Of a stretch of DNA of 64,000 nt, positions 1 through 60,208 are shown in pieces. The position numbers were made by a program, and so were the translations under genes. Each line of letters begins with the position of its first letter. Position 1 is the first letter of the stretch. Source of the stretch: Rebecca billardiae RCC1528 (Eukaryota; Protista; Haptophyta); the NCBI GenBank assembly GCA_965240325.2, contig OZ251222.1:4278001-4342000 (forward strand), in the 5' to 3' direction. The notes below the pieces were generated by a model that was given only the letters and a program-made list of their open reading frames with translations, ran no database searches and was not told the DNA's origin.

Positions 1-1298
1 CTCGCGTTGGCGCCGCCGAGCGGGGCGTCGTTGAGCAGCTCGCCCGCGTCCACCCACGCTTGCACCGCGCCGACGGAGACCGCCTCGACGCCGAGCGTGC
101 CCGTCGCGGCCGCGCCGTCGTCCGCGCCCGCCACCACGCCCGCGCTGTCTGAGAGGTACGCGTTGCTCGCAGCGTTCACGTACTGCACGACGCGGCACGA
201 GAGCGCGGCCGCGTGCGAGCCGGGCGGCGCGTCCGCGCGCACGGCGAGCGTGAGCGTGATGAGCGGCACCGCGGCGCCCGTCACGTCCGCCTCGGACGTG
301 CCGCCCGTCAGCCCGGACGCCACGACGCCGAGCGTGCCCACGCCGTCGTCGTTGAGCGTGGGCGAGTTGTACGTGCTCGCCACCGCGCTCGCGCTCACGC
401 CCAGCAGGCTCGCGTTGTACGACAGCTCGACCTGCCACGTGCTGAGCGCCGCGCCGCCCGTGTGCGCGTACAGCACGAGCTCGAACGAGTCGCCCGCGAA
501 GATGGGCGACTTGGCCATCTGCGCGAGCAGCCCGACGGAGGGCAGCGTGTACGCCGTCGGCGCCTTGGCAAGCGTGATCGCGCCCGCGGCCTCGCACGAG
601 CCCGCGTTGCCGCCGCCGTCGTACGAGAAGTCGACGCGCGCGCTGAGCGTGCGCGCGGCGCTGTCGCTGAACCACGCGGCGTCGAGCGTCGCGCTGCACT
701 CGCCCACGCCGCTGCTCGAGCCGGGCATCCCGCACGAGGACTGCGCGCTCTCCGAGCCGCCGTCGAGCGAGAGTGTGAGCAACACGCCCAGCCCGCTGCT
801 CGTCACCTGCGAGCGCTGCGCCTCGTCGCGCATCTGGTAGTTGACGCGCGCGTCGAGGCGGTCGACGTACAGCACGGCGGTGCGCGGCACGCAGCTCACG
901 CTCGCCGCCTGCTGCGCGACCAGCGTGAAGCCGGCGCTCGCCACGCCCAGGTCGATGCCGTGCGACGACGCGCGGACCGTGCCCGCGTCGCCCTTGGTCG
1001 CGCCCGCAAAGAAGCCCACGCTCACGTTGTGGAAGCTGCCCGCGCTGCTCGCCGAGCCGTGCAGCGGCAGGCCTGGGCTGCCCGCCGCCGGGTAGAGCGT
1101 CAGCAGCGCGCCCTCGACCAGGTCGGCCGCGTCGAAGGCGAACGGCGGCAGCGGCGGCGAGGGCGGCGAGGGCGGCGGGTGCGGCAGCGTGCGCGGCGGC
1201 GGCGGGCTCGGCGGCGACGGCGGCGGGGCCGGCGGCGGCGGGCTCGGCGGCGGCGACGGTGGCGGCGACGGCGGCGGCGACGGCGGCGGCTGCGGGAA

Positions 1299-1329
<31 letters not shown>

Positions 1330-4300
1330 GGCGGCGGGCTCGGCGGCGGGCTCGGCGGCGGGCGCGGCGGCGGGCTGGGCGGTGGAAGCGGCGGCGGCGG
1401 TGCCGGCGGTGGGGATGGCGGCGGCGAGGGCGGCGGGCTGGGCGGCGGCGAGGGCGGCGGCGAGGGTGGCGGGAACGGAGGCGGCGGCGAGGGCGGCGGC
1501 GAGGGCGGCGGCGAGGGCGGCAGCGTGGGAGGCGGGCTCGGCGGCGGGTGTGGTGGTGGCGGCGCCGGCGGTGGCGACGGTGGCGGCGATGGAGGCGGGC
1601 TGGGCGGCGGCGAGGGCGGCGGCGAGGGCGGCGGCGCGGGTGGCGGCGGCGAGGGCGGCGGCGAGGGCGGCGGCGAGGGCGGCGGCGAGGGCGGCGGCGA
1701 CGGCGGCGGCGGCGAGGGCGGCGGCGAGGGCGGTGGCGAGGGCGGCGGCGCAGGCGGCGGCGCAGGCGGCGGTGACGGCGGCGGCGACGGCGGCGGGCTC
1801 GGCGGAGGCGACGGCGGAGGGCTCGGCGGTGGCGGGCTTGGCGGCGGCGAGGGTGGTGGCGAGGGCGGCGGCGAGGGCGGCGGGCTCGGTGGGGGCGGGC
1901 TCGGCGGCGGAGCCGGTGGTGGCGAGGGCGGCGCCGCCGGCGGTGGCGACGGTGGCGGGCGTGGCGGCGGCGACGGCGGCGGGCTCGGAGGCGGCGACGG
2001 CGGTGGCGACGGCGGCGACGGCGGCGGGAAGGGCGCGGCCCTGGGCGGCGGCGGCGGCGCGGGCGGCGGAGACGGTGGCGGCGACGGCGGCTGGCTCGGC
2101 GGCGGCGAGGGCGGCGGCAAGGGCGGAGGCGGCGAGGGCGGCGGCGAGGGCGGCGGGCTCGGCGGCGGCGACGGCGGCGGCGAGGGCGGCGGCGGCGACG
2201 GCGGCGGCGAGGGCGGCGGCGATGGCGGCGGCTGGGGCAGAGGCGGCGGCGGCGACGGTGGCGGCGACGGCGGCGGTGAGGGCGGTGGCGATGGCGGTGG
2301 CGACGGCGGCAGGCGCGGCGGAGGGCTCGGCGGCGGCGATGGCGGCGGTGACGGTGGTGGCGACGGCGGCGGCGCGGGCGGCGGCGGCGAGGGCGGTGGC
2401 GACGGTGGCGGCAACGGCGGCGGGCGCGGCGGCGGGCTCGGCGGCGGCGAGGGCGGTGGTGACGGCGGTGGCGACGGCGGCGGTGCGGGTGGCGGCGGCG
2501 AGGGCGGTGGCGACGGCGGCGGCGACGGCGGCGGGCGCGGCGGCGGGCTCGGCGGCGGCGAGGGCGGTGGTGACGGTGGCGGCGACGGCGGCGGGCTCGG
2601 CGGCGGCAACGGCGGCGGCGATGGCGGTGGGGCGGGCGCGCCCGTGGGCGGCGGTGGCGACGGCGGAGGCGACGGCGGCGGGCTCGGCGGCGGGCTCGGC
2701 GGCGGCGGGCTCGGCGGCGGCGACGGCGGCGGCGACGGCGGCGGCGATGGCGGTGGGCTCGGCGGCGGAGGGCTCGGCGGCGGTGATGGCGGCGGCGAGG
2801 GCGGAGGGCTCGGCGGCGGGGTCGGCGGCGGCGGGCTCGGCGGCGGTGACGGCGGCGGTGAGGGTGGCGACGACGGCGGTGGCGAAGGTGGTGGCGCGGG
2901 CGGCGGGCTCGGCGGCGGGCTCGGCGGCGGCGACGGCGGTGGCGATGGCGGCGATGGCGGCGGGAACGGCGCAGCGCGCGGCGGCGGCGGCGGGTTTGGC
3001 GGTGGGCTCGGCGGTGGTGACGGCGGCGGGCTGGGTGGCGGCGACGGCGGTGGCAACGGCGGTGGCGGCGAGGGTGGCGGCGATGGCGGCGGGCTCGGTG
3101 GCGGCGACGGTGGCGGCGACGGTGGCGGCGACGGTGGCGGCGGAGACGGCGGCGGTGATGGCGGCGGCGAGGGCGGCGGGGACGGAGGCGGCTGGGGCGA
3201 GGGCGGCGGCGAGGGCGGCGGGGACGGCGGCGGCGACGGGGGCGGGCTCGGCACGCCCACCGGCGGTGGCGGCGAGGGCGGTGGCGACGGCGGCGGCGAC
3301 GGCGGCGGCGACGGCGGCGGCGACGGAGGCGGGCTGGGTGGCGGCGACGGTGGCGGCGACGGCGGCGGCGAGGGTGGTGGCGATGGCGGCGGGCTCGGCG
3401 GCGGCGGCGATGGCGGCGGCGAGGGTGGCGGCGACGGCGGTGGCGAGGGTGGTGGGCTTGGCGGCGGAGACGGCGGAGGCCGCGGCGGCGGCGATGGCGG
3501 CGGCGATGGCGGCGGCGACGGTGGCGGCGTTGGTAGGGACGGCGGCGGGCTCGGTGGCGGGCTCGGCGGCGGGCTCGGCGGCGGCGATGGCGGTGGTGCG
3601 GGCGGCGGGCTCGGCGGCGCGCGAGGCGGCGGGCTCGGTGGCGGGCTCGGTGGCGGGGACGGCGGCGGGGGCGAGGGCGGAGGCGAGGGCGGAGGCGAGG
3701 GTGGCGGCGACGGCGGCGCACGCGGCGGTGGGGATGGCGGCGGGCTCGGCGGTAGCGGGCTCGGCGGCGGTGATGGTGGCGGTGCCGGCGGTGGCGCCGG
3801 CGGCGGCGACGGCGGCGGCGGGCTCGGTGGCGGTGACGGCGGCGGCGAGGGTGGCGGGCTCGGCGGCGGTGACGGCGGCGGCGAGGGTGGCGGGCTCGGC
3901 GGCGGGCTTGGCGGCGGCGACGGCGGTGGCGACGGCGGCGACGGCGGCGGGAATGGCGCAGCGCGCGGCGGTGGTGGCGGGGTTGGCGGCGGGCTCGGCG
4001 GTGGTGACGGGGGTGGGCTCGGCGGCGGCGAGGGCGGCGGCGAGGGCGGCGGTGGCGAGGGCGGCGGCGAGGGCGGCGACGACGGTGGCGGCGACGGTGG
4101 CGGCGAGGGTGGCGGCGACGGTGGCGGAGGAGACGGCGGCGGCGACGGCGGCGGCGATGGTGGCGGGCTCGGTGGCGGCCGGGGCGACGGCGGCGGCGAC
4201 GGCGGCGGCGACGGCGGCGGCGACGGGGGCGGGCTCGGCACGCCCACCGGCGGCGGCGGCGAGGGCGGTGGCGAGGGCGGCGGCGACGGTGGCGGCGAGG

Positions 4301-7300
4301 GCGGCGGGCTTGGTGGCGCCGATGGTGGCGGCGATGGTGGTGGCGAGGGCGGCGGGCTCGGCGGCGGCGGCGACGGTGGCGGCGACGGCGGTGGCGACGG
4401 CGGTGGGCTCGGCGGCGGTGGGCTCGGCGGCGGGCTCGGCGGCGGCGAGGGCGGGGGCGCCGGTGGCAATGCTGGCGGGGGCGACGGCGGTGGCGATGGT
4501 AGGGACGGCGGAGGGCTCGGCGGCGGGCTCGGCGGCGGCGATGGTGGCGGGATCGGCGGTGGCGAGGGTGGCGGCGCAGGTGGCGGGCTTGGCGGCGGGG
4601 ACGGCGGTGGCGACGGTGGCGGCGACGGAGGCGGCGGGGAAGGCGGCGGGGAAGGCGGTGGGCTCGGCGGCGGCGAGGGCGGCGGCGGCGAGGGCGGCGG
4701 GCTTGGCGGCGGCGAGGGTGGCGGCGACGGCGGCGGCCGCGGCGGTGGCGGCGATGGCGGCGGGCTGGGCGGCGGGCTTGGCGGCGGCGTCGGCGGCGGT
4801 GACGGTGGCTCCTTGGGAGGCGACGGTGGCGGCAGGGGCAGCACTCGCGGCGGCGGTGGTGGCAGCGGTGGCGGGCTTGGCGGCGGCGACGGCGGCGGCG
4901 TCGGCGGCGGGCTCGGCGGTGGTAGCGGCGGCGGTGGGCTCGGCGGCGGCGAGGGGGGCGGTGACGGTGGTGGCGAAGGCGGTGGCAAGGGGGGCGGGCT
5001 GGGGGGCGGGCTGGGCGGCGGGCTCGGTGGCAGCCGCGGCGGTGGACTAGGCGGCGGGCTCGGCTCGCTCGGCGGCGGGCTCGGCGGCGGGCTCGGTGGC
5101 GGCTGCGGCGGCGGGCTAGGCGGCGGGCTGGGCGGCGGCGCGGGCGGCCGTGGCGGCGGCGACGGTGGCGGCCGCGGGGGCGGGCTCGGCGGTGGCGACG
5201 GCGGCGGGGATGGCTGCGGCGGCGGTGGGCTCGGCGGCGGCGAGGGCGGCGGGCTCGGCGGTGGGCTCGGGGGCGACGAGGGCGGCGGGCTCGGTGGCGG
5301 CCTCGGAGGGGGCGACGGCGGCGGTCTCGGCAGCGGCGGCGGAGGCGACGGCGGCGGAGAGGGCGGCGGCGACGGCGGCGGCGACGGCGGCGGCGACGGC
5401 GGCGGTGAGGGCGGCGGCGACGGCGGCGGCGACGGCGGTGGCGACGGCGGCGGCGGCGATGGCGGCGGCGACGGCGGCGGCGACGGTGGCGGGCTCGGCG
5501 GTGGCGATGGTGGCGGGCTCGGTGGCGGGCTCGGCGGCGGCGACGGCGGTGGCGTCGGCAACGGTGGCGGCGGCGACGGCGGCGGCGAGGGCGGTGGCGA
5601 CGGCGGGGGGCTCGGTGGCGGCGACGGTGGCGGCGACGGCGGCGGCGAGGGCGGTGGCGAAGGCGGCGGACTCGGCGGTGGTGAGGGCGGCGGCGTGGGA
5701 GGCGGCGGCGATGGTGGTGGCGACGGCGGTGGTGATGGTGGCGGCGAGGGTGGCGGCGGCGACGGCGGCGGCGACGGCGGCGGCGACGGCGGCGGCGACG
5801 GTGGGGGCGGCGACGGCGGTGGCGACGGCGGCGGCGACGGCGGCGGGCTCGGCGGTGGCGACGGCGGCGGGCTCGGTGGCGGGCTCGGTGGCGGCGACGG
5901 CGGTGGCGTCGGCAACGGTGGCGGCGGCGAGGGCGGCGGCGACGGCGGCGGCGACGGCGGCGGCGACGGTGGCGGGCTCGGTGGCGGTGACGGCGGCGGC
6001 GAGGGCGGCGGCGAGGGCGGCGAGCTGGGCGGCGGCGAGGGCGGCGGCGAGGGTGGCGGCGGCGAGGGTGGCGGCGATGGCGGCGGCGACGGCGGCGGGG
6101 CTGGCGGCGGCGATGGCGGCGGTGACGGCGGCGGCGACGGTGGCGGCGACGGTGGCGGTGAGGGCGGTGGCGAGGGCGGCGGCGAGGGTGGCGGCGAGGG
6201 CGGCGGCGAGGGTGGCGGCGGCGACGGCGGCGGAGAGGGCGGGGGCACGGGCGGCGGGCTCGGCGGCGACACCGGCGGCGGCGATGGTGGCGGGCTCGGC
6301 GGCGGCGACGGCGGTGGCGATGGTGGTGGGCTCGGCGGCGGGCGCGGCGGAGGGGACGGCGGTGGAGACGGCGGCGGCGGTGAGGGCGGCGGCGATGGTG
6401 GCGGTGAGGGCGGCGGGCTCGGTGGCGCCGCCGGCGGCGGGGAGGGCGGCGGGCTGGGCGGCGGCGAGGGCGGCGGCGACGGTGGCGGCGAGGGGGGCGG
6501 GCTGGGCGGCGGCGAGGGCGGCGGCGCGGGCGGCGGCGGCGAGGGCGGTGGCGAGGGCGGCGGCGAGGGCGGCGGGCTCGGCGGCGGCGAGGGCGGCGGG
6601 CTCGGCGGCGGACTGGGGGGCGGCGACGGTGGCGGCGAGGGCGGCGGCGAGGGCGGTGGCGAGGGCGGCGGGCTCGGCGGCGGCGACGGTGGCGGCGGCG
6701 ACGGTGGCGGTGAGGGCGGCGGCGAGGGCGGTGGGCTCGGCGGCGACACTGGAGGTGGCGAAGGTGGCGGGCTCGGGGGCGGTGACGGTGGCGGCGACGG
6801 TGGCGGCGACGGTGGCGGGCCCGGCGGCGGCGAGGGCGGGGGCGACGGCGGTGGCGGCGAGGGCGGCGGCGAGGGCGGCGGCGAGGGCGGCGGGCTCGGC
6901 GGCGGGCTTGGCGGCGGGGATGGCGGCGGGCTCGGCGGCGGCGAGGGTGGCGGCGCGGGCGGCGGCGGCGAGGGCGGTGGCGAGGGCGGCGGCGAGGGCG
7001 GCGGGCTCGGCGGCGGCGAGGGCGGCGGGCTCGGCGGCGGACTGGGCGGCGGCGACGGTGGCGGCGAGGGCGGCGGCGAGGGCGGCGGCGAGGGCGGCGG
7101 GCTCGGCGGCGGCGACGGTGGCGGCGGCGACGGTGGCGGTGAGGGCGGCGGCGAGGGCGGTGGGCTGGGCGGCGGCGACGGTGGTGGTGAGGGGGGCGGG
7201 CCCGGCGGAGGCGAGGGCGGGGGCAACGGCGGCGGCGGCGAGGGCGGCGGCGAGGGCGGCGGCGAGGGCGGCGGGCTCGGCGGCGGGCTCGGCGGCGGCG

Positions 7301-9302
7301 ACGGCGGCGGGCTCGGTGGCGGCGACGGGGGTTGCGAGGGCGGCGGCGAGGGCGGTGGCGAGGGCGGCGGGCTCGGGGGCGGCCGCGGTGGGGGTGGCGA
7401 CGGAGGCGGCGACGGCGGTGGCGAGGGCGGCGGGCTGGGCGGCGGTGGTGACGGTGGCGGCGACGGAGGCGGCGGGCTCGGCGGCGGCGAGGGCGGTGGG
7501 CTCGGCGGCGCGCCCGGCGGCGGGCTCGGCGGCGGGCGCGGCGAGGGCGGCGGGCTCGGCGGCGGGCGCGGCGGCGGCGGTGAGGGCGGTGGCAGTGGCG
7601 GCGCGGGCGGCGGCGGCGACGGCGCGGGCGGCGGTGGCGGTGCGGGCGGCTGTGAGGGTGGTGGCGGCTTGGGTGGGCTGGACGGGGGCGGCGGCGACGG
7701 CGGCGGTGACGGGATGGTGGGCGTGGGCGGCGGGGAAGGCGGTGGGCTCGGCGGCGGCGACGGCGGGGGCGAGGGCGGCGGGCTCGGCGGCGGCGACGGC
7801 GGCGATCCTGGTGGCGGCGGCCTCGGCGGCGGCGACGGCGGCGGGCGCGGCGGCGGCGGCGACGGCGGTGGCGACGGACGCGACGGCGGCGGCTGGCTCG
7901 GCGGGCGGGGCGGCGGCGGCGATGGCGTGGGCGGCGGCGGCGGGTTGGGCGGCGGGCGTGGCGGCGGCGGCGAAGGCGCGGGCGGCGGCGGCGGGAAGGG
8001 CGGGTTTGGCGGCGGGCTCGGCGGCGGCGATGGCGGCGGGCTCGGCGGCGGCGCCGGCGGCGAGGGCGGCGGGCTCGGCGGCGGCGAGGGCGGCGGCGAG
8101 GGCGGTGGTGACGGCGGCGGCCGAGGCGGCGGCAAGGGCGGCGGCGGGCTCGGCGGCGGGCTCGGCGGCGGGCTCGGCGGCGGGATCGGCGGCGGGCTCG
8201 GCGGCGGCGACGGCGGCGGGCCCGGCGGAGGGCTCGGCGGCGGGAAGGGGATGGGTGGCGGGCTCGGCGGCGGGCTCGGCGGCGGGCTCGGCGGCGGGCT
8301 CGGCGGCGGGCTCGGCGGCGGGCTCGGCGGCGGGCTTGGGGGCGGCCGCGGCGGTCGTGGTGGCGGCGGGCTCGGCGGCGGGCTCGGCGGCGGCGCCGGT
8401 GGCGACGGCGGCGGCGACGGCGGCGGGCTCGGCGGCGGGCTCGGCGGCGACATCGGCGGCGGCGGCGACGGCACGGGCGGCGGCGGCGGCGGGAACGGCA
8501 GCGTGCGCGGCGGCGGCGGCGGGCTCGGCGGCGGCGCCGGCGGCGGGCTCGGCGGCGGGCTCGGCGGCGGGCTCGGCGGCGGGCCGGGCGAGGGCGGCGG
8601 GCTCGGCGGCGGGCTCGGCGGCGGCGACGGCGGCGGGCTTGGCGGCGGGCGCGGCGGCGCGGGCGGTGGGCTCGGCGGCGGCGACGGCGGCGGGCTCGGC
8701 GGAGCGCCAGGCGGCGGGCTCGGCGGCGGGCGCGGCGACGGCGGCGGGCTCGGCGGCGGGCTCGGCGGCGGGCTCGGCGGCGGGCTCGGAGGCGGCGACG
8801 GCGGTGGGCGCGGCGGCGGGCGCGGCGGCGGGCTCGGTGGCGGGCTCGGCGGCGGGCCGGGCGGCGGCGGGCTCGGCGGCGGGCCCGGCGGCGGGCTCGG
8901 CGGCGGGCTCGGCGGCGGGCTCGGCGGATTGGGCGGGAGAGGCGGCGGCGGGCTCGGCGGCGGGCTCGGCGGTGGGCTCGGCGGCCGCGCCGGCGGTGAC
9001 GGCGGCGGCGGTGACGGAAGTGGCGGCGGCGGCAGCGGTGGCGGCTTCTCAGCCAGCCGTCGCCGGGCCGTCGCCGCCGCGTCGCCGCGCAGCGGCGTCG
9101 GCGCCGCCGGCGCGTCAACGGCGAGCAGCAGCGCGACCGCGGCCGCACACGCGAGCGCGCCCGCGGCAGGCCAGAGGCGCGTGCGCGCGCGCCTGCGCGC
9201 GCTCGAGCCGGCGGACGACGCGTCGCCGGGCGCGCGCCGCGCGGTCACCGCCGGCGCGGGCTCGCGCGTGGGTTCACTGGGCAGCAAGCAGCAGGTGGCC
9301 AT
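1..9302 (-). CDS. Giant extensin-like (SPPP/SPPPP) proline-rich surface protein with TMEM132-like/cohesin-like domains; 3' end outside window
   Basis: ATG at 9302-9300 (MATCCLLPSEPTREPAP...). Hydrophobic anchor LWPAAGALACAAAVALLLAV, then RRRL, then about 2,600 aa of PPSPPPPSPP repeats (~9045-1140). A globular region follows, with GVGECSATLDAAWFS, KSPIFAGDSFELVLYAHTGGAALSTWQVELSYNASLL and GELLNDAPLGG. The frame stays open to position 3 with no stop, so it is missing from the ORF track. Confidence 0.9.
1140..9045 (-). repeat. Low-complexity (CCG)n/Ser-Pro coding repeat with higher-order internal duplications
   Basis: Continuous ggcggcggcgac/gag/gggctc units on the + strand. Distinctive markers recur at ~990 bp (ggcacgcccaccggc ~3250 and ~4237; ggcgcagcgcgcggc ~2968 and ~3955), ~355 bp (ggcgtcggcaacggt ~5551 and ~5905) and ~430 bp (ggactgg ~6610 and ~7039). 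Confidence 0.9.
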
Positions 9303-9615
9303 TGCTCGGACCACCAGTGGCGTGTGTGTGTCCCCAGCCGGTGCCCCCTGCCCCAGTGCTGCTTCCCATCGCCACTGCAAGATCGCGCAAGGCCACCTTT
9401 ACCCGCGTTGACTATCGTAATCGTACACCCGCCTTGACTCTAAATAGAAAGCCGTTGCGTACTTTATAGGCACCGGCGCCGGCAAGTTGCGGCTCTTGAT
9501 CAGGTGGGGCCAACGGTGGGCAAGTCCCATCCGGACTACAGCCGGACACACTGCCTTGATTAGCGCCACCGCTTCGCCCGTGGCGCGCGAACACGCGGAG
9601 GGTGTCGGCCTTGGA

Positions 9616-11400
9616 ATGGCCCGCCACGCCGCGGCCCTCCTGCTCGCGGCGAGCGCGGCTGCGCCGGGCGCGGCGGCGCGCGGGCGCGGCTCCGCGTCCC
9701 AGCCGCCCAACGTCGTCATCCTCCTCGTCGACGACCTCGGCTACGGCGACATTGGCGCGTACGGCAACAGCACGATCAAGACGCCGCACATCGACCGGCT
9801 CGCGCGCGAGGGCGTGCTGCTCACGCAGCACCTGGTGGCCTCGCCGATGTGCACGCCGTCGCGCGCGGCGCTGCTCACCGGGCGCCACGCCATCCGCACC
9901 GGCATGTCGGGCGACAAGATCGCGCGCATCATGCCGTCGCCCGCGGTGCCGGGCGGCATCGACACGCGCGAGCGCACGATCGCGTCCATGCTCAAGGCGC
10001 GTGGGTTCGCGACGGCGATGGTCGGCAAGTGGCACGTGGGGATGGGGACGAACTGCTCGCTCTGCCCCCGCGCGCACGGCTTCGACTCGTACTGGGGCAT
10101 GCCCGTCACCAACGTGCAGGCGTGCGGGTACAAGGGCGAGTGGGTGACGCAGCGCTCGAGGCTCGAGTTCATCCTCAGCCGCTACCCGGCCGGGCTGGTC
10201 GCGCGCTCGGCGGTGGGGCTGCTGTGCGTCACGGCGCTGCTCTGCGGGCTCGGCCGCGCGCCGCGCTCCGCCTTCCTCCTCCACGCGCTGTGCACGCTGC
10301 TCCTCATCTACGTCATGCAGTGGGTGCCCTCCACCATCATGCTGCTCAACCCGAAGGCGTGCGTGCTCTTTGAGAACGACACGGTGGTCGAGCAGCCCGT
10401 GCAGCTCAAGTACCTCACGCACCGCGCGACGCTGCGCGCCGAGCGCTTCGTCCGCGCGGCCGCGGCGGAGAAGCGCCCGTTCTTCCTCTACCTCGCGTAC
10501 CACAAGGTGCACACCGCGCTCTTCTCCACCGACGAGTTCGCGGGCGTGTCCGCGCACGGCGAGTACGGCGACAACGTCGAGGAGATGGACGACTCGGTCG
10601 GACGCGTGCTCGCCGCGCTCGACAAGGCGGGCGTGGCGGAGAGCACGCTGGTGTACTTCTCCTCGGACAACGGGCCGTGGAAGGAGCAGGCCTCCGAGGG
10701 CGGCGCGTGCGGCTCCGCGCCCGCCGACCCCGCCCACCCGCTGCGCGGCGGCAAGGCGCAGACGTGGGAGTGCGGCATCCGCGTGCCCGGCATCGTGCGC
10801 TGGAAGGGGCGGCTCAAGCCGCGCGTCGAGCACGCGGCGACGACCAACATGGACCTGCTGCCCACCATCGCCGCGGCCGTCGGCGCGCCCGTCCCGCCGC
10901 ACGTCGCCGACACCGGCTACGCGCCCGCGCCCGCGGGCGAGGCGATCGACGGGCGCGACCTGCTGCCGCTGCTCAGCGGCGCCGCGCCCGCGCCGCCGCA
11001 CGACGTGATCTTCCACTACTGCGACCAGCTGATTGCCGCGGTGCGCGTGGGCCGGTACAAGGTGCACTTCGCCACGACCAAGTGGTCGGACGTCGAGCGC
11101 GAGGCGTGCCCCGACGAGATCATCTGCCCGTGCGCCGCGGTGCCGCATGAGCCGCCGCTCGTCTTCGACATCGAGGCCGACCCGGCCGAGCGGGTGCCGC
11201 TCCACCTCGCCGCGGACGAGGGCGCGCGCGCCGCGGCGGCGGCGGCGGCGGCGGCGAGGGAGAAGCAGCGCGCGTCCGTCGTGCCCGTACGCACGCAGAC
11301 CGAGCTCGCGCCCGTGCTCGACAACTTCCCGTGCTGCGGCTACCCGCACCCCGGGCTGGCGCGCACGCTCGCCATCATCACCGACAGCTGCGGCTGCTGA
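9616..11400 (+). CDS. Arylsulfatase, steryl-sulfatase (STS/ARSD-like) type with internal transmembrane hairpin
   Basis: Signal peptide MARHAAALLLAASAAA; PNVVILLVDDLGYGD; CTPSRAALLTGR (FGly motif); GKWHVG; two hydrophobic segments; SSDNG; LRGGKAQTWECGIRVPGI; C-terminal CC...CGC. Confidence 0.92.
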   Translation: MARHAAALLLAASAAAPGAAARGRGSASQPPNVVILLVDDLGYGDIGAYGNSTIKTPHIDRLAREGVLLTQHLVASPMCTPSRAALLTGRHAIRTGMSGDKIARIMPSPAVPGGIDTRERTIASMLKARGFATAMVGKWHVGMGTNCSLCPRAHGFDSYWGMPVTNVQACGYKGEWVTQRSRLEFILSRYPAGLVARSAVGLLCVTALLCGLGRAPRSAFLLHALCTLLLIYVMQWVPSTIMLLNPKACVLFENDTVVEQPVQLKYLTHRATLRAERFVRAAAAEKRPFFLYLAYHKVHTALFSTDEFAGVSAHGEYGDNVEEMDDSVGRVLAALDKAGVAESTLVYFSSDNGPWKEQASEGGACGSAPADPAHPLRGGKAQTWECGIRVPGIVRWKGRLKPRVEHAATTNMDLLPTIAAAVGAPVPPHVADTGYAPAPAGEAIDGRDLLPLLSGAAPAPPHDVIFHYCDQLIAAVRVGRYKVHFATTKWSDVEREACPDEIICPCAAVPHEPPLVFDIEADPAERVPLHLAADEGARAAAAAAAAAREKQRASVVPVRTQTELAPVLDNFPCCGYPHPGLARTLAIITDSCGC

Positions 11401-11802
11401 GCGCGCAGAGTCGACCGCACGGAGCGGGTGGCGTGGACGAGTCACGAGTGATGGATATTGGATTGCGTCTTCGGTCTTGGGAGCGCAGCCTCGTGTCCGC
11501 GTGACGGACACCGCACGGCTCCCCTGTGAGCTGACCGCCCGCCTGCCCGCGCCAGAAGCTGCAGGGGCTTGGTCAAGATTCTGCCTGACTTATCTGATAC
11601 TAGTTACTGATAACTGAAGCTGGATACGGCGACTCGCTGACTCGGCAGCCGCGGCCGCGCTGTGCCGGGCGCGTGACTTTTCACTTTTGTCAGTTATTCC
11701 AACCGAGTGACAGAGCCGCAGGCAGGAGCTGGAGCGGAGTAGCAGACGCTGAGCTTTGCGACTGTATAAGTACGCTGATTCTGCACATGCCCGTCGAGTC
11801 TC

Positions 11803-13083: not shown

Positions 13084-13096
13084 CCCCCCCTCGACA

Positions 13097-21801: not shown

Positions 21802-22968
21802 TCAGCTCGGGTGCCGCGGTGGGCGCCGACGTGGGCGTATGGCCGGCGCCGGCACTACTACTGCCGTCGGTGGGGCCGCGGGCCGCCGTCTTGCCGACCG
21901 GCCTCGCGCGTGCCTGCCCCGCGAGCGCCGTTTCGAGGCGCCGCCGGCCTGGGTCGTGTTCGCCGTGGCGTTCACCGTGCCGCCGTGCGCCTTTTCCTTG
22001 TGACGCGCCGCCGCCTGGTCCCACGGCGGCGTGCAGTGGTGGTCGATCAGGCACGTGCTGCCGGTCCACGCCTGCAGCATCGGCGTGCAGCAGTCCTCCG
22101 GGAACGGGGAGCCGTACCACGCCTCGAACGCCCGCTCCTGCTTTGCGGTTTTGGGCCGCATCTCCTTGCAGTTGAACGCGCCGCCCAGCGCGAGCACGCG
22201 CGTGCCCGTCGCGCGGAGCGAGCGCCACAGCGGCGGCTGGTCCATCACCTCGATGGCGGACGAGGTCGGGCCGCACCGGCTCCTGACATGCGGCCAGCTC
22301 AGCCCCTCCTTGCACGGCGCGCTCGCAAGCGAGCGCACCGCGCCCTCGTACTCCTCCGCCCAACGCGCCCACAGCCGGTCGGTCCTGGGCGTTCGCCGCC
22401 AGAACAGCACACCGCCATTCACGCGCAGTTCGGCGAGGCAGCCGGCAATGGAGGGCTTTCCGCCGAGGGGTGGTTCGCAGCGGAAGCCGTAGGCCGCAAG
22501 GTCGTACGCGCCGTCGAGCATCGCCTCGACCGCGAGCAGCATCGCGCGCGCGTTGCCGCAGAAGTGCGTGTCCGTGTCCACAAAGAGCGTGAAGTCGTAC
22601 GGCGAGCGCATGATCGCAGCGATCTTGTGCCGGCGCTCGCCGACGAGCGTGAGGTTGGGCAGCAGCGACATGGGCTCGGAGACGTGGCCCGTCAGCACGG
22701 CGAACTCCACGCCGCGCCGCGCCGCTGTCGGGCTCATGCGGTTGAGCACGTCCACGCCCTCGGCCGACGTGAAGAGCGTCACGGCCACGCCCGCCTGGCG
22801 CGCTGCGAGCGCGGCGGCTAGCGCCCTGCGCACGTAGCCCTCTTCGCCGAACGCCGCAAAGACGATTCCGTGCGACGTGTTCCGCGTCAGCGCGATCGGG
22901 CTCGCGCCGCCCCGCAGCCCGCACAGCCCGAGTAGCAGCAGCGCCCCGCGCGAGAGGTGGGCCCGCAT
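21802..22968 (-). CDS. Putative GT-A fold glycosyltransferase (nucleotide-diphospho-sugar transferase-like)
   Basis: N-terminal hydrophobic segment (ALLLLGLCGL); KIAAIMRSPYDFTLFVDTDT (DXD motif); VNGGVLFWR; MDQPPLWRSL; FN. Confidence 0.72.
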   Translation of the reverse strand: MRAHLSRGALLLLGLCGLRGGASPIALTRNTSHGIVFAAFGEEGYVRRALAAALAARQAGVAVTLFTSAEGVDVLNRMSPTAARRGVEFAVLTGHVSEPMSLLPNLTLVGERRHKIAAIMRSPYDFTLFVDTDTHFCGNARAMLLAVEAMLDGAYDLAAYGFRCEPPLGGKPSIAGCLAELRVNGGVLFWRRTPRTDRLWARWAEEYEGAVRSLASAPCKEGLSWPHVRSRCGPTSSAIEVMDQPPLWRSLRATGTRVLALGGAFNCKEMRPKTAKQERAFEAWYGSPFPEDCCTPMLQAWTGSTCLIDHHCTPPWDQAAARHKEKAHGGTVNATANTTQAGGASKRRSRGRHARGRSARRRPAAPPTAVVVPAPAIRPRRRPPRHPS

Positions 22969-40305: not shown

Positions 40306-40789
40306 CGCCCTCGTCGAGCAGGTACGCGAGGGCGGGAGTCGGGGACGGGCGAACTCTCGACTCGCCGCGACGAAAGTGGCCGGCGGCGTGCGCGAGGACG
40401 GACGCACTACAACGGGCGTTGCGGCAAAAAGTAATAGGGTGAGAGCCTGAAAGTTCCCTGAAGACGACGCGCGCTGATTGGTCAATCGCTCATCGCCGGT
40501 ATTACACAAGCCGTCGTTCGGCCAGTCGCCAGTCGAAGCAAAGTCGGCACCGACATGACGACACTGGCCGATCGCCCGCCCCGCCGATCGGGCTGCCACG
40601 CACGGCCAGCGGGGCCGTAAGTCGGCATTGAGAGGCACTCGGCTCCAGAGCACCGGCTGGCGGCCGCCTACCTGCGACACCACTCACCAATCAGACCGTC
40701 GTCACATATTACTATTCGCCCGTCTGCACTTGCAGTCGCCGTGAGCCCGCGCCCTTCGCGGTCGGACGGCGCCGCGTTGTCGGGGGCCG

Positions 40790-46559: not shown

Positions 46560-46571
46560 TTTCGCGCGAAA
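46560..46571. promoter_or_regulatory. Palindromic E2F-like site TTTCGCGCGAAA in the HMMR-like/PPR divergent promoter
   Basis: Two overlapping TTTCGCGC matches, ~125 bp upstream of the HMMR-like ATG. Confidence 0.35.
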
Positions 46572-47777: not shown

Positions 47778-47814
<37 letters not shown>

Positions 47815-51670: not shown

Positions 51671-52006
51671 GCTGCCCTCGAAACGGATGGCTGCACTGTT
51701 GTTACAAGTATGCGGATACAACACGATCGATCGGTACCCCTTAGGCCCTAGTTGCAAACTGTACCCGCTTATTACATATATTCCTTACTCACTTTGTAGC
51801 TTTCATTATATCAGTGGAGAGTCAGTTGGCGGTCTTCATTCTGAATCTGATGTAGTCTGCCGACCGTCACTCGCCGTCAGTCGTCACCGTGGTGACGCGG
51901 CGTCGGAGATCAGACTCCGCAAGAGTTTCAGACTCTGTTCGTCGGCATGAGCCGCAGTGATGCCATGGGGATCATGCTGCGGGCATGGCTTCATGCTGGT
52001 GTACTA

Positions 52007-53495: not shown

Positions 53496-53655
53496 TACAC
53501 TGTCATGGCATGCATTGGTGCGCCGGGCGCCGGGGCCGGACGAAGACGGAAGAGCAGCGTGAGCGGTGCCGGCGCGAATGCGCGACAGGTGCGCGCCGTT
53601 TCGCGGTTTCGCCTGCGCAGCTCCGGAGTTAAAACTAGCTCGCCAGCACGGTCCA

Positions 53656-56600
53656 TCAGCAGCGCATGGGGCCTCCGCCCTGTGCGCGCGGCGGCCGTGC
53701 CTGTGGCGCCGCCGCTGCGGGCGCCGAGGCCGAGTCCGGTGCGGTCGCGGCCTCGGGCTCGGCGTGCGCGCCGGCAGGCGTGTGCCTCAGCGGCGGCAGA
53801 CTGTGCATCCGAGCGCGGTGTGGCGATGCTCCGAGGCTGCGCTCGGATGGTACTAGAAGGCTGTGCAGTCGAGCGCGGGGTGGCGAGTCGCCCAGGCTGC
53901 GCTCGGCTGCGCTCGCTGCCACGGACTCGGCCGAGGGCGGCGCGGGCACGCCCGCCGCCCCGCCGCCGGCCTCCGCCTCGCTCGGCTCGGCCGGAGGTGC
54001 GGGCTGCGAGCTCGCGCTCAGCATGCTCTGCACGGAGAGCGCGTCGGACGTGCACGGCGACAGCCGGCGCGAGGGCGGCGAGTCGCCGCCGGGCGCGCCG
54101 CCGTGCGGCTCTGACCCGTTGTGCTGCGTGCTGGCGAGCGAGAGCCTCGACGAGTCGAGCCGCTCGCCCAGGGCTTTGCTGCTGGCGGGGGTGCCCGCGC
54201 ACGCGGCAGTCGCGGCTTTGCGCGAGAGCGCTGCGTTATGTGCGCCCTTGGCATCGGCCTCGGCCTCGGCCTTGGCCTCGGCCTCGGCGGTCTGCGCGGC
54301 GTGTGCGGAGCTGGGCGTCGGCCGGATGTCGTCGCCGCCTCCCGCCAGCTCCGCCTGCTGCCGCAAGGCGTGGCCACCGCCGGGCGCACGCGCGGGCGCC
54401 TCCGCCGGCGGCGCCTCCGCCGCGCCCTCCGCGCCGCCGCCGCCCACCTGCCGCGGCAGCGCGTACCCGCTGAGCAGCTCCTTGATCCGGTTGATGCCGG
54501 GCGTGTCCTTGTTCACGCACTCGTCCAGCCCGGCGGCTTCGAACGCGTGCCGGTCCGCCGAGCCGACCGGGTCGCCCGTCATGCCGACGATGCGCCCGCT
54601 GAACCCGGCGGCGCGCAGCGCGCGCACCGCCTCGTCGCCGCGCATGCGCGGCATCTGGTTGTCCGTGATCACCAGCGCGTATCGCTGTGCGTGCGCTGCC
54701 TCGAAGGCCTGCAGCGCGTGCTGCCCGTCCTCCGCCTCGTCGTACGGCACGCCCAGCTTGCCGAACACGCGCAGCCGCATCGAGCGGCGCAGGATGGCGT
54801 CGTCCTGGGCCGCGGCGGGAGGGCGGGGCGCGCGCGAGGGGGCGGTGAGCGGCCGCGCTGGGCGCGCGAAGAGGCGCGCCGCGCCCGTCGCTCGCGCGCG
54901 AGCGCTCGCGCGGCGGGCTGCGGCGCCGCGCGGTGCCGGGTGCGGTGCGGTGGCGCCGCGCGCACCTCGACGTAGAGGAGGCGGAACGACGGCGGGAAGG
55001 TGAGCTGCGAGGCCTTGGCGGGCGAGGCCCTTGGCTGCGCGGGCGGCGTGCTCTCCGCGGACGCGGGCTGCGCCACGGCCAGCGCGGCCGCCGCCCCCGT
55101 CTTGGGCTGGCCGGCCGGCGCGTCCGCCGCGGGCGCGCCGGCCGGCCCGCTCGCGCCGGCCGTGCGCTGCAGCTCCTGCTCGTCGGCCGGGGGTGCGGCG
55201 GGGAGGAGCAGGCGCAGCGTGAAGGTCGCGCCCTTGCCCAGCCCGTCCGAGCTCAGCTCGAGCCCGCAGCCCGGCCCGTGCAGCTTGAGCAGCTGGCGCG
55301 TGATCATCAGCCCCAGCCCAGTCCCGCCGTTGCCCTGCAGCTGCCCCTGCCCCACCTGCGTGAACGCCTCGCCGTGCAGCAGCGTGCGCATCTCCGCGGC
55401 GGTGAGGCCCGGGCCCTGGTCGACGACGTCGACGCGCATCGCCCACGCCTGCTCGGCGCCGTCGGCGGCGCCTCGCCCGCGGACGCCCGCGGCGGCGGGC
55501 GCCGCGTCAGCCGCGGCGCTCTCCGCGGCCGCGGGCGCGGCCGCCGGCAGCGTGGCGGGCTCGACGGCGACGCCGATCGTGACGGCGGCGCCGGCCGGGG
55601 AGAACTTGAGCGCGTTGGACACGCCGTTGTTGAGGCACTGCTGCAGCCGGCGCATGTCGCCGTAGACGCGCGCGCTGCGCGCCGAGCCGCTCGGCACCGC
55701 CGCCTGCAGCCGCACGCCGCGCGCGCGCGCCTGCCCCGCGAACGTGTGCAGCGCGCCCGTGACGAGCGCGCACACGCCAAACCGCTCGGGCACGAGGCTG
55801 AGCCGGCCCGAGTCGATGCGCTCAAAGTCGAGCATGTCCGAGACGATGGTCTCCATCAGCGTGGCGCACGTCGCGAGCGATTCGACGCAGTCCGACACCG
55901 CGGGGTGCGCGAGCGTCGTGGAGGGCGCCATCTCCTTCAGCTCGGTCATCATGTTGGTGATCGTGAGCAGCGGGCTGCGCAGGTCGTGCATCACGATGCG
56001 GATCAGCCGGCCGCGCGCGGTCGTGGCGGACTCGGCGGCGGAGGTGCGCACGGCCATGGCCGTCCGCTCCTTCTCCTCGTGGCGCCACCGCCGCGTCGCC
56101 GCCACCACCTCGCGCCCGAAGAACCACTGCGAGCGCATCGCCACCACGCGGCGCAGCACCGCGTACGACAGGATGATGAACGCGGCCACAAACGCCGCGA
56201 GCTGGTCAAAGTCGAGCGGATTGCCGGGCGCGGGCAGGATGAACTCGGCGAAGAGCAGCTGGCTCACCGTCCACAGCAGGATGAGCGCGTACCACCCGAG
56301 GTTGAGCGGCAGCACCAGCCCGGCCGCCATCGTCGAGACGAGCGCGGCCATCACGGACGTGGCTGCGGGCTCGTTTGACGACGCGCCGCCGCCGATTGCG
56401 CCGAGGAAGTACTCCACGCGGTGGTTGGCGAGCATCACCACCGTCGTCACGAGCATGCACTGCCACGCCGTCGCGAGCGCCTGCCCGAGCGCAAGCGAGA
56501 CCGTCCGCTGGCTCTGCGCCGTGACGGCGAACAGCAGGAAGCACGAGTTCAGCAGCCCCGCGACCGCGCTGCGGATGATGATCGCGAGGAGCGCGCGCGA

Positions 56601-56927
56601 CGACTGCACGCCAAATGTGAGGACGAGCACGATCATGCCGAGCTCGAGGCACGCGAGCCGCGCGGCCTGGCGAAAAAAGCTCTCCCGGTGCGACGTGTGC
56701 CGGTACTCGCACTCGACCGCGCGGTCGAGAAACGTGCCGCCCCACGAGAAGAGCGGCGGCGTCACGTCGAGCTCGGGCTCGTCGTCCTCCGCGTCCGGCG
56801 GCGAAGCGGGGAGGGAGGCCGGCAGGGGGTCGACGGGCGAGCGCGTGTCGCGCTCGCCGCCGGACGACACCCGCGCTAGCGAGGCCGCCGGGCGATGTGT
56901 GGAGTGCACGCGCCTGGGCGATCCCAT
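53656..56927 (-). CDS. Membrane-bound hybrid histidine kinase (multi-TM sensor, HisKA, HATPase_c, receiver); intron 54805-54965
   Basis: About 6 hydrophobic helices; RIVMHDLRSPL (H box); GDMRRLQQCLNNGVSNALKFS (N box); DQGPGL; GGTGLGL; receiver LLYVE|DD...LVITDNQMPRMRG...IVGMTG...CVNK. Confidence 0.92.
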
Positions 56928-57715
56928 CGGGGGAGCTGGTGGTGGGCCGCGCACGGGGCGGGCTAGCCGAGGTGCTCAGTTCGTCCACCTCCACCACAAC
57001 CACGAACGGCGAATGTCACACTATGTTCGACGCGATTCGCGCATCCTATGACGTAACACGCAAGGTACCGGTAGGTCCTTTGGGTAGGTACTGTAGTGCC
57101 AAAGGACCATCAAATACGATGGTCCTTTGGTAGTGCTGATGACGATGACTATTTTTCAACATCGATACAAATCGCACGGCGGCAGTTGATTATGATTTTG
57201 GTGTTCATCATGCGACGAGTGTATCAGTCAAAACTGCAAACGACGAAATTGTATGTGTAGTGGATTGGATGCGTGACTCCGATGACATATTGGATCGAAA
57301 TGTAATGGTGTGAATCTTTGAGATATCGATCACGGGTACAGTTTGGGTGCTTCACGGTCATGACTGGGTAATAAGTCTTGATTTTAGGCTAACCGATTGC
57401 ATGATTATCTATTATTGATGTCGCCCCCGCCATCAAGTCTGAACCGGCACCTATCCGAATCACCAGTGCGTGACAGTACCGGCAAAACGGTCTTGCATCA
57501 GTAAGCACGTCAATTATGGTGGGCGCTGGGCGGAGGGTAATTTGTTCCTAGAGACTTCGAGATTCTTCCAGTAGTCCGGTCCGGTAGACCGCCAAGAAAA
57601 AGCAATATTATACAATAACGGTAAAAACATCGCGCAGCATTATTCGAATAAAAAAGACAGGTCGCGAAAAAAGTAAAAAACGCGCGCCCGCCATCGCCCA
57701 ACGCCGCCCGCGACC

Positions 57716-60208
57716 ATGCAGCCCCGCGGCGGGCGCCGGCAGACCGGGCAGAAGCAGGGCTCGTGGGTGCGCACCGCCATCTGCTTGTCGACGGCTGCGC
57801 TCCTCAGCCTCATCACCTACTGGAATGTGAGCTTTGTCTACGCGCGCTCGCGCGCGAGCGCGCTGCAGCCGCAGGAGGGCGACGAGCAAATCGCGTACGA
57901 TCGCAGCTCCCGGCACGGGAGGCGCAGCGAGGCCAGCCTCATGGTCGGCCACGACGCGAACGACGGTGGCGACGACGACGGGTTCGGCTCGGACAGCGAC
58001 GACGACCTCGCGCACGCCGTGCACGCCGCGGGCGGCGCGGGCGAGGCCGAGGACGACGAGGAGGTCGACAGCGAGGCGTTCGGGCTCGAGGAGGGCGAGG
58101 TGGACCCGGTGTCCAAGCCGCCCGCCGGGGAGGGCGGCGCGCGCGGCGTCGCGGGCGAGGGCGGCGGCGGCGGCGCGGCCAAGCCCGCGCTCACGGGCAA
58201 GGCGGCGTTCGGGCTGGCGCCGCCGCTGCCGTCGCACTGCCCGAGCACGCTGCGGCCGTACCACACGCTGCTCACCGCGCAGTCGACCACGTACCAGAAC
58301 TGGCAGTCGCGCATCATGTACTACCACTTCACCAAGCAGCAGAAGGCGAGCCAGCCGTGCACCGAGATGGGCGGCTTCACGCGCCTCGTCGCGCACAAGA
58401 AGGGTGCGCGCGCGCGGCCGCGCGGCCGCCGCGCGGCCGCGCGCGCGCGCGGCGCCGCCCCCGTCCGAGCGCCGCGCTCGCCCCGGCTGCCGCTCGCGCC
58501 ACGCGCCGCGCGCCGCGCGCCCCGCAGGCGAGCCCGACGGCCTGGAGGACGAGATCCCCTCCGTCTTCGTCACCGAGTACACGGCGGAGGAGCTCGCGCG
58601 CTTCAAGCACTTTGCCGTGATGAACCGGCCGTTCAGCGTGCTGCAGATGCTCGCCAACCCGGGTGCGCGCGCGCGGCGTCAGCACGCGCGCGCCGCGCGC
58701 CGCGCCTCGGCCCACGCGCCTTGCTTGGCACGTGGCGGCCGCCCCTGCCCCGCTGCGCGCGCGAGCGCAGCCATGATGGCGCGCATCACGGAGGAGTACC
58801 TGATGATCGCCGAGACCGACCACGTGCTCATGCGCCCGCTGCCGAACCTCGCCACGCGCGAGCAGCCCGCCGCGTACAACTTTGGGTACATGCACGCCAA
58901 CGCGGGGCAGCAGCCGGTGCGCGGCGCGCGGAGGCGGCGCGCGGAGGCGGCGCGGCGGCGGCGCCGCGGCGGCGCGGCGCGGCGCGGCGCGGTGGCGCGC
59001 GCCGAGGGGTCGGCGCGCTGAGCGCGGCGCCGGCGCGCGCCGCTGCTGCTGCTGCGCAGATTATCTCGCACATCGCGCCCAAGGTGCGCTGGCAGGACGT
59101 GCAGCCCATCGGCCCGTCGCCGTGCATCCTGCACCTGAGCTCGCTCCAGAAGTTTGCGCAGAAGTGGAACGACTACTCGATCGCGCTCAAGCTGTACGAG
59201 CCCGCGGACAAGATGTGCGCGCACGGGCGCGCGCGCGCGCGCCGCGCGCCGCGCGCGGGCGCGCGCGCGCCCACCTCGCCCCGCCCCGCCTGCTTGCGCC
59301 GCAGGTTCGGCTGGGTGCTCGAGATGTGGGGCTACGCGATCGCGGCCGCGGACGAGGGCGTGGTGCACAAGGTGCTGCCCAACATGCAGTGCGAGCCCGG
59401 CGCGCAGTCGCGCATGGCGGAGGAGTACACGGACAAGTACTACATCCACCACTACACGTACGGCTCCGAGTACAAGCTGAACGGCGAGCCGCAGGGCGTC
59501 AACCAGATCGGCGAGTGGTCGCTCGACAAGCGGCACTACGGCGGCGCGTACCCGCCGCGCGACCTGCAGCCGCCGCCCGCCACAGGCCACTCGGCCAAAA
59601 ACCACGCGCCACGGTGCGCGCGCCGCGCGCACCGCGCGCGCGCGCGCTCGGCGCGCGGACGCCCACCGCGCCCCTGCCCCTCCCCCGCGCGCGCGGCGCA
59701 GCTGGCTGACGATGGCGTGGAACGAGGCGTCGGCCAACATCCCGACCTGGCCCGACACAAAAGCCCTCGGCACACTCGGCTGGCGGCGCGAGCCCGCGAC
59801 AGACGCGCAGATCAGGTGCCGCGCGCGCGCGCGGCTGGGCTGCGCGCGCCATCGCCGCGCGCGCGCTCACGCCCTCGCCCCGCGACCGCGCGTGCCCCGG
59901 CCCTGCCGCGTCGCAGCGCCTCGCCCCTCGCGTCGAGCATCGCGGGGAGCAAGTGGAAGTGGGGGGGCGTGCCGGGCCTGGTGTTCGGGCCTGCAGGCAA
60001 GCTCACGACGCCGTGGGGTGAGGGCAAGTGGGGGCTGGTGCCGACGACCGGCGCGGAGGGCGGCGCCGCCGCGCCCGGGGAAACGATCTTCGTGGACTTC
60101 GCCTCCGCGCTGCACAACCTGCAGTTCGATCTCGCGGCGGGCACCTTCATGTCCACGCGCGTGGGCGACGGCGAGCACGTGAGCGGCGTGCGCGACGTGA
60201 CAGAGTGA
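57716..60208 (+). CDS. HPAT: Hydroxyproline O-arabinosyltransferase (HPAT/RDN1-like, GT95) with extra C-terminal Trp/Gly-rich domain; introns 58404-58527, 58663-58770, 58917-59059, 59215-59304, 59614-59701, 59816-59916
   Basis: Type II TM anchor; YHTLLTAQSTTYQNWQSRIMYYHF, MGGFTRL, DGLEDEIPSVFV, VMNRPFSV, EEYLMIAETDHV, IGPSP, FGWVLEMWGYAIAAA, IHHYTYG, IGEWSLDKRHY. All six GT-AG introns restore one frame. Confidence 0.9.
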   Translation: MQPRGGRRQTGQKQGSWVRTAICLSTAALLSLITYWNVSFVYARSRASALQPQEGDEQIAYDRSSRHGRRSEASLMVGHDANDGGDDDGFGSDSDDDLAHAVHAAGGAGEAEDDEEVDSEAFGLEEGEVDPVSKPPAGEGGARGVAGEGGGGGAAKPALTGKAAFGLAPPLPSHCPSTLRPYHTLLTAQSTTYQNWQSRIMYYHFTKQQKASQPCTEMGGFTRLVAHKKGARARPRGRRAAARARGAAPVRAPRSPRLPLAPRAARRAPRRRARRPGGRDPLRLRHRVHGGGARALQALCRDEPAVQRAADARQPGCARAASARARRAPRLGPRALLGTWRPPLPRCARERSHDGAHHGGVPDDRRDRPRAHAPAAEPRHARAARRVQLWVHARQRGAAAGARRAEAARGGGAAAAPRRRGAARRGGARRGVGALSAAPARAAAAAAQIISHIAPKVRWQDVQPIGPSPCILHLSSLQKFAQKWNDYSIALKLYEPADKMCAHGRARARRAPRAGARAPTSPRPACLRRRFGWVLEMWGYAIAAADEGVVHKVLPNMQCEPGAQSRMAEEYTDKYYIHHYTYGSEYKLNGEPQGVNQIGEWSLDKRHYGGAYPPRDLQPPPATGHSAKNHAPRCARRAHRARARSARGRPPRPCPSPARAAQLADDGVERGVGQHPDLARHKSPRHTRLAARARDRRADQVPRARAAGLRAPSPRARSRPRPATARAPALPRRSASPLASSIAGSKWKWGGVPGLVFGPAGKLTTPWGEGKWGLVPTTGAEGGAAAPGETIFVDFASALHNLQFDLAAGTFMSTRVGDGEHVSGVRDVTE

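Follow-up and report, generated by a model that had tools for sequence, protein, structure and literature searches.

Does a stretch of algal DNA that carries both a giant serine- and proline-rich protein and an enzyme of the type that glycosylates such proteins in plants encode a working unit, or do the two lie near each other by coincidence? The question is raised by a 64,000-nucleotide stretch of the genome of the haptophyte Rebecca billardiae RCC1528 (C1:4278001-4342000, where C1 is contig OZ251222.1; the whole stretch is referred to as the window). The assembly comprises 72 Mb in 41 contigs, which are cited by number, and GC content within the window ranges from 58% to 88%. An earlier reading made from the letters of the window, referred to here as the sequence-only reading, had picked out four parts: a gene for a giant Ser-Pro3-5 protein (the rod gene), a GT95/HPAT enzyme, a DXD glycosyltransferase and a sulfatase. 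All four are present, at the coordinates given in Table 1.

The window is probably best explained by two systems that extend over the whole genome of a pavlovophyte haptophyte, the rods and the HPAT-like enzymes; it would hold one member of each, and the two would be unlinked. The product of the first would be a membrane-anchored surface protein with polyproline-type Ser-Pro3 rods and globular modules between them; the window would carry the N-terminal third of one such protein, whose gene is one of many. The second would be represented by one of seven strong paralogs, a spliced GT95/HPAT-family gene whose product would be a Golgi-type glycosyltransferase with type II membrane topology. In the proposed pathway the prolines of the rods would be hydroxylated in the endoplasmic reticulum (ER) or Golgi, HPAT-like enzymes would add the first sugar to hydroxyproline (Hyp), GT77 enzymes, one of them XEG113-like, would extend the sugar chain, and the sugars would stiffen and shield the rods, by analogy with the hydroxyproline-rich glycoproteins (HRGPs) of green algae. 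Glycosylation in this scheme would serve rod proteins at large and would not be the task of a locus-specific unit. The gene content points to an alga that probably glycosylates its Ser-Pro rods with plant-like enzymes genome-wide, and a local enzyme-substrate-sulfatase system in the window is not supported.

The Ser-Pro rod gene

The giant Ser-Pro3-5 protein that had been read at positions 1-9302 is, at the level of sequence, confirmed as a real and very large gene, far larger than the portion in the window. When 30 kb of upstream DNA was added, the frame was found to be open for 8,341 codons (window 9398 to -15624) and to encode 1,085 SPPP motifs, 479 of which lie in the window part of the frame (minus strand, Met 9302 to window start). 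The Met at 9302 is followed by a basic stretch and then by the hydrophobic segment LWPAAGALACAAAVALLLAV, and the protein is laid out as anchor, stalk of ~2,675 aa, non-repetitive region of ~1,430 aa and a further stalk of ~3,960 aa. A Pfam search of the globular parts returned no family in the window part and, beyond the window, just a weak Dockerin_1 match (E 0.022).

The window stalk (2,675 aa) is 72% Pro and 19% Ser. Most of its 656 Pro runs are three residues long (495), with 70 of length four and eight of length five. The repeated Ser-Pro3-5 that marks extensins is therefore found in the stalk; the Tyr cross-linking motifs (YxY, VYK) that also mark them are not, there being no YxY and one Tyr in the 2,675 aa. 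Because of this, the rod is classified from its translation as HRGP-like and not as an extensin in the strict sense.

The HPAT-like gene and its relatives

The GT95/HPAT enzyme that had been read at 57716-60208 is likewise real, and judged by its sequence features the gene is an intact member of the GT95/HPAT family. An open reading frame (ORF) of 830 aa across this interval matches the Pfam HPAT profile PF23452 with 215 bits (E 1.9e-63; cut-off 23.9), and the exon blocks (70.7, 93.1 and 153.6 bits) cover profile positions 1-284 of 307. A six-frame search of the genome, together with tblastn using a paralog, showed that the domain is split over two frames. The gene model, built from the sequence, contains six introns of 88-143 nt and 87-94% GC, each with a 5' GT (five GTGCGCG and one GTGCCGC) and a 3' GCAG; every splice phase agrees with the homology-bearing frame, and the coding sequence is 1,839 nt. 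The family motifs FTRL, NRP, ETDH, GPSP, GWVxEMW, HYTY and DKRH are all kept in the exon translations when aligned with 105 relatives. The N-terminal tail, as read from the translation, is short and basic; it precedes a hydrophobic anchor of 22 residues (TAICLSTAALLSLITYWNVSFV) and an acidic stem, and the predicted layout is that of a Golgi-type type II membrane protein.

The 830-aa ORF is open by composition and is not an unspliced gene. The introns, which lie within 58404-59916, are so rich in GC that ORFs run through them, and long ORFs in this genome overstate exon length and insert Arg/Ala-rich filler.

A search of 5.8 billion clustered proteins with the largest exon found no relative above ~50% identity; the best matches were marine metagenome proteins, the prasinophytes Cymbomonas and Pyramimonas, and haptophytes. 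The three main exon blocks match a plant RDN2-like HPAT with E values of 2e-11 to 4e-20 and 28-51% identity (figures lowered where introns are read through), and match one prasinophyte protein with 32-65% identity. The plant match is, on these alignments, similarity at the level of the GT95 family. The GT95 family has a relative in GT96, which comprises serine galactosyltransferases (PMC8012813). Assignment of the window enzyme to GT96 was tentatively set aside, as its exons match plant HPAT to E 4e-20 in an informal comparison that covered plant HPAT and not GT96.

A quick maximum-likelihood (ML) tree was built from 106 rows, in which the window enzyme was represented by one exon (42% of columns) with the intron masked with X; the tree has long branches and no outgroup. 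On one side of the starred (95) branch are the plant HPATs, the paralogs from C37 and C5, and proteins of Emiliania and Prymnesium parvum, and on the larger side are prasinophytes, haptophyte proteins, the window exon and the paralogs from C8 and C34. In this unrooted, single-exon comparison the window exon does not group with plant HPATs, and orthology of the window enzyme to plant HPAT1-3, as judged from these sequences, finds no support in the tree. The comparison with plant HPAT1-3/RDN1 that the sequence-only reading had recommended thus upholds the profile match, but not a grouping with the plant enzymes.

Seven strong HPAT loci were found in a profile search of the 72-Mb contigs, and HPAT-domain proteins are listed in public annotations of Diacronema, Emiliania, Chrysochromulina and Prymnesium. 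Among named proteins, the closest are those of the pavlovophyte haptophyte Diacronema lutheri, with 75% identity to one HPAT paralog, which fits the earlier guess that the alga is non-green and has a complex plastid.

Candidate enzymes for hydroxyproline glycosylation across the genome

It had also been proposed that the genome be searched for RRA/XEG113-like GT77 enzymes. These were found: there are at least 40 GT77 matches, one of them full-length and XEG113-like. In a similarity search alone, the best named matches of this protein, encoded on C11, are plant XEG113 arabinosyltransferases; the alignment with the Nicotiana XEG113 spans 77% of the query at 39% identity (E 9e-101). The protein (C11:58847-62533) is a GT77 member of ~800 aa with a transmembrane anchor and a C-terminal extension. 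Prolyl-hydroxylase-family proteins are represented by 54 matches to PF13640, candidates for a secretory prolyl 4-hydroxylase of plant or algal type.

Several published observations from haptophytes are in line with such a set of enzymes. ExAD-like GT47 proteins occur in haptophytes (PMC5371791), an Emiliania huxleyi Ser-(Pro)3-4 protein has been described as similar to extensins (PMC10290126), the KEGG O-glycan map is expanded in the Phaeocystis globosa genome, with a figure that includes Hyp and arabinofuranose (PMC11347835), and arabinose makes up 17% of the exopolysaccharide (EPS) of Diacronema ennorea (PMC10498797).

A number of results weigh against the reading of two unlinked, genome-wide systems that together yield Hyp glycosylation. 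The two PF13640 matches that were compared with solved structures, from the four best that were fetched, were nearest to EGLN/PHD-type or bacterial PHD-type enzymes. The Pfam families PF03214 (UDP-arabinopyranose mutase (UAM), RGP/GT75) and PF03275 (UDP-galactopyranose mutase, GLF) each gave 0 candidates in 72 Mb, in a pipeline that recovered other families from fragments of exons 35-45 aa long. The comparison of HPAT neighbourhoods extends to four of the seven strong loci. Finally, on C37 an HPAT paralog is followed on the same strand, after ~1.1 kb, by a rod ORF of at least 8,986 aa.

The donor sugar

The sequence-only reading had envisaged a plant-like, arabinosylated HRGP coat, and had named UDP-arabinose mutase as one of the activities to look for. 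The substrate class, the GT95 enzyme and the GT77 enzymes of such a coat are present, but "arabinosylated" has become less secure because neither UDP-arabinopyranose nor UDP-galactopyranose mutase was detected. The sugar may be arabinose, although, going by the gene families searched, the arabinofuranose donor appears to be without a recognisable source in the genome.

Since the lineage appears to be without a mutase making UDP-arabinofuranose, the HPAT-like enzymes of this alga could put another sugar (galactose, arabinopyranose or xylose) on the Hyp or Ser of the rods, or act on other acceptors. The failure of both mutase profiles, in a search that recovered other families from 35-aa pieces, is in keeping with this, as are the starred branch that parts the window enzyme from plant HPATs and the kinship of GT95 with the GT96 serine galactosyltransferases (PMC8012813). 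A survey (2025) moreover reports UAM only from streptophytes, chlorophytes and Euglena (PMC12507850). However, the domain of the window enzyme retains 34-51% identity to plant HPAT by exon and keeps the family-wide motifs. An XEG113-like enzyme is also present, and plant XEG113 likewise uses UDP-arabinofuranose. The clade of the window enzyme includes prasinophyte green algae, and green algae are among the lineages listed with the mutase (PMC12507850); pavlovophyte EPS is rich in arabinose (PMC10498797); and Pfam profiles would not pick up a mutase that is divergent or non-homologous. Taken together, a different sugar or acceptor is considered unlikely.

Linkage of the rod and HPAT genes

The rod gene and the HPAT gene are ~48 kb apart, and ~10 genes and a retroelement intervene: copia reverse transcriptase, amine oxidase, S49 peptidase, kinase, hybrid-cluster protein, HMMR-like coiled coil, PPR protein and hybrid histidine kinase. 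The sequence-only reading had itself cautioned that so loose a linkage may be chance, and this caution was well placed, as the genes between are unrelated and both gene classes are common.

Rod loci were counted with a 33-nt pattern and a rare-codon subsample; a protein search for them was swamped (7,144 candidates, 150 scored). The PPPxPPPxPPP DNA pattern has 64,758 matches in the genome compared with 115 for the control, which at 12 bases per step corresponds to ~0.78 Mb of rod DNA, or ~1% of the genome. The rare-codon subsample, with 42 matches, puts the number of loci at no fewer than 10, spread over 9 contigs. An estimate from the initial 1.58 Mb of C1 is that 15-33% of 64-kb windows touch an array, so that one or two rod-containing windows are expected by chance among the seven strong HPAT loci. 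Of the four HPAT neighbourhoods compared (60-64 kb each), two contain giant arrays (the window and C37), and those on C8 and C5 contain none. With rods making up this share of the genome and HPAT genes at seven loci, the claim that enzyme and substrate form a cluster does not stand. A gene cluster is a set of contiguous related genes beyond what chance provides, and no such set was found in the window. The closeness of the two genes looks like chance because each belongs to a large genome-wide set and the genes between them are unrelated. Coincidence is also the preferred explanation for the 48-kb spacing, for the position of the sulfatase head-to-head with the rod gene and for the DXD transferase.

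One Ser-Pro array, of 33 kb (C30:166125-199190), contains a rare-codon 33-mer that recurs mostly every 519 or 543 bases; this spacing points to a young higher-order repeat. The HPAT paralog on C37 (70003-101251) is placed by the tree on the side of the plant HPATs; the adjoining Ser-Pro3 ORF has 970 SPPP. The adjacency of this pair is suggestive: it is mildly above chance and leaves room for local coupling, but the comparison is post hoc and not significant.

Table 1. Coordinates of the features of the window that are discussed in the text
Feature	Position in window	Strand	Basis or remark
Giant Ser-Pro3 rod gene, 5' third	1..9302	minus	Met at 9302; frame runs on 15.6 kb past window start
Likely signal anchor of rod protein, hydrophobic LWPAAGALACAAAVALLLAV	9117..9176	minus	residues ~43-62 from Met; read from translation
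First (SPPP)n stalk, ~2,675 aa	1089..9113	minus	composition; tandem repeat period 6/27
Start of ~1,430-aa non-repetitive (globular) region	1..1193	minus	continues outside window
Steryl-sulfatase-like sulfatase	9616..11400	plus	PF00884 E 1.3e-60, Sulfatase_C, signal-like N-terminus, CTPSR formylglycine motif
Secretory-type GT-A ("DXD") glycosyltransferase, specificity unassigned by match	21802..22968	minus	FVDTDTHF motif, signal-like N-terminus
Hybrid-cluster (prismane) protein	38326-40683	minus	
Hybrid histidine kinase with receiver domain	53656-56954	minus	
HPAT-like GT95-family gene, seven exons	57716..60208	plus	Pfam HPAT, tblastn with paralog, junction reading
HPAT exons	57716-58403, 58528-58662, 58771-58916, 59060-59214, 59305-59613, 59702-59815, 59917-60208	plus	
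Metallophosphoesterase fused to SdiA-regulated propeller	61849-63981	minus	

The sulfatase and the DXD glycosyltransferase

The secretory sulfatase that had been paired with the Pro-rich gene exists as described, its Met at 9616 being 313 bp head-to-head from the rod gene ATG on the opposite strand; the possibly sulfated coat that had been proposed does not follow from it. The ORF at 9616-11400 has the Sulfatase domain and the C-x-P-x-R formylglycine motif that characterise type I sulfatases, and aligns with human steryl-sulfatase (PDB 8eg3) in a single stretch over residues 26-535 (E 2.9e-107). It is one of ~20 sulfatase loci in the genome. Because a sulfatase is a hydrolase that takes sulfate off, the gene says nothing on whether a coat is sulfated, and as evidence for the "possibly sulfated" coat of the sequence-only reading this enzyme, closest to steryl-sulfatase, was rejected. 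The protein has a hydrophobic insert at ORF residues ~230-290. This is about where human steryl-sulfatase has its membrane hairpin. From its sequence the protein would be an ER-membrane-type arylsulfatase C in an alga.

The DXD glycosyltransferase that had been noted at 21802-22968 does show GT-A features, including the FVDTDTHF motif, but these are generic features of nucleotide-diphospho-sugar transferases only. Its score against the GT77 profile (16.5 bits, E 0.0084) is under the cut-off of 22, and a sequence search returned no PDB relative. Its assignment as an RRA/XEG113-type enzyme is not supported at this sub-threshold score.

It could still be argued that rod, HPAT, sulfatase and DXD transferase form a loose, co-regulated neighbourhood serving one arabinosylated, sulfate-edited coat: the four genes lie inside 60 kb, sulfatase and rod share the 313-bp head-to-head spacer, and a second HPAT paralog is found 1.1 kb from another rod gene. 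Such a neighbourhood is nevertheless very improbable. Some ten unrelated genes and a retroelement separate rod from HPAT, two of the four HPAT genes compared have no rod array nearby, and rod arrays, sulfatases and GT-A enzymes are all frequent in the genome; moreover, the sulfatase resembles steryl-sulfatase and not the carbohydrate sulfatases, and removes sulfate, and the DXD enzyme is no recognisable GT77.

Reading frame of the rod array

All six frames are open across the 85% GC repeat at 1.1-9.1 kb, among them, on the plus strand, a Gly frame (GGGD/GGGE/GGGL) of 2,740 aa and, on the minus strand, one rich in Arg (2,682 aa) and one rich in Ala. Because of this, an open frame alone is little proof of a gene here. 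The codons within the array are more informative. For Ser, 348 codons are TCN and 168 are AGY; Pro codons vary at the third base alone, and in the opposite-strand Gly frame the residue that faces Ser is D in 171 cases, L in 148 and E in 121. As Ser is kept in both codon classes while the mirror residue of the Gly frame flips between D, L and E, the codon pattern indicates that the Pro frame is the conserved, selected frame.

The Pro frame shifts register near window -14.1 to -14.8 kb; beyond this it stays open for 5,311 aa or more, as far as the fetched DNA reaches. The register change is inside the second array, at about window -14,800 to -14,066 (C1:4263200-4263935), and one search row gives an open frame of 20,497 aa at this place. 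Two genes may meet here; alternatively, the region may belong to a single gene of ~28,000 aa whose register shift would reflect a short intron or an indel of the assembly.

The proposal that the rod gene is non-working and stays open by chance, whether as a GC-rich hexamer repeat that has expanded or as a degenerate pseudogene, draws on the six open frames and the register change but deserves hardly any credence, given that Ser is held by two unrelated codon classes against a mirror residue that varies, that Pro codons differ in the third base alone, that the same frame crosses the 1,430-aa non-repetitive region without a stop, that the 5' end has a Met and then a hydrophobic anchor, and that a Ser-(Pro)3-4 protein was detected by E. 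huxleyi proteomics (PMC10290126).

Significance

HPATs have been called plant-specific (PMC4738400), and in reviews their listing is confined to green algae (PMC7773692). The seven HPAT-like genes, the XEG113-like gene and the ~1% of the genome that is Ser-Pro3 rod DNA extend this Hyp chemistry to a major group of marine phytoplankton and provide a concrete hypothesis for the cell covering of a haptophyte. Plant-like rod glycosylation in haptophytes is plausible and is not new in kind, being implicit in public annotations and in earlier work (PMC5371791, PMC10290126, PMC11347835). The useful new lead is the missing mutase, which raises the question of which sugar is carried by haptophyte Hyp and how its donor is made.

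It is suggested, tentatively and with some doubt, that haptophytes run full Hyp glycosylation on a vast repertoire of Ser-Pro3 rods, with an expanded GT95 family, an XEG113-like GT77 and ExAD-like GT47 proteins, but with neither furanose mutase. If this is true, either the lineage has an undiscovered enzyme that makes UDP-arabinofuranose, or its GT95 and GT77 enzymes use a different donor. The "plant-specific" machinery would then also date back further, or be more mobile, than has been assumed, since the window paralog clusters with prasinophyte proteins.

Comparison with known systems

The sulfatase shares the CTPSR motif and the hydrophobic insert with human steryl-sulfatase (PDB 8eg3, 1p49); it differs in being an algal protein, for which a link to glycoprotein sulfate is unsupported. 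The HPAT-like enzyme resembles plant HPAT1-3/RDN1-2 (GT95) in its Pfam family PF23452, with near-full coverage of the domain, in its motifs and in its type II Golgi-enzyme layout. The plant enzymes are ~360-370 aa, whereas that of the alga, at ~612 aa, carries an extended acidic stem and additional sequence at its C-terminus, and belongs to an algal (prasinophyte and haptophyte) clade apart from plant HPATs. Plant HPATs are furthermore fed by UDP-arabinopyranose mutase, while a Pfam search detected none in the genome of the alga. Within the same genome, the C37 pair combines the same enzyme family and substrate class as the window, but at ~1.1 kb and not across 48 kb with unrelated genes, and its paralog, unlike that of the window, is on the plant-HPAT side of the tree.

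The rod itself has repeated Ser-Pro3-5 in common with land-plant extensins. It differs from them in being without the YxY cross-link motif (one Tyr in 2,675 aa), in being ~100-fold longer, and in its predicted membrane anchor, a land-plant extensin being a small secreted wall monomer. For green-algal HRGPs, the comparison is with general background that includes Ferris 2001 (cited in PMC10290126). Against this background, the haptophyte rod is far longer, with at least 8,341 aa in one frame and stalks of ~2,700 and ~4,000 aa; it is also set apart by its nearly pure SPPP unit, its haptophyte host and its putative glycosylation. What it shares with the green-algal rod HRGPs (the sexual agglutinins of Chlamydomonas, GP1 and the volvocine pherophorins) is the combination, at the (for the rod, predicted) surface of a unicellular alga, of long Ser/Pro polyproline-II shafts with globular domains.

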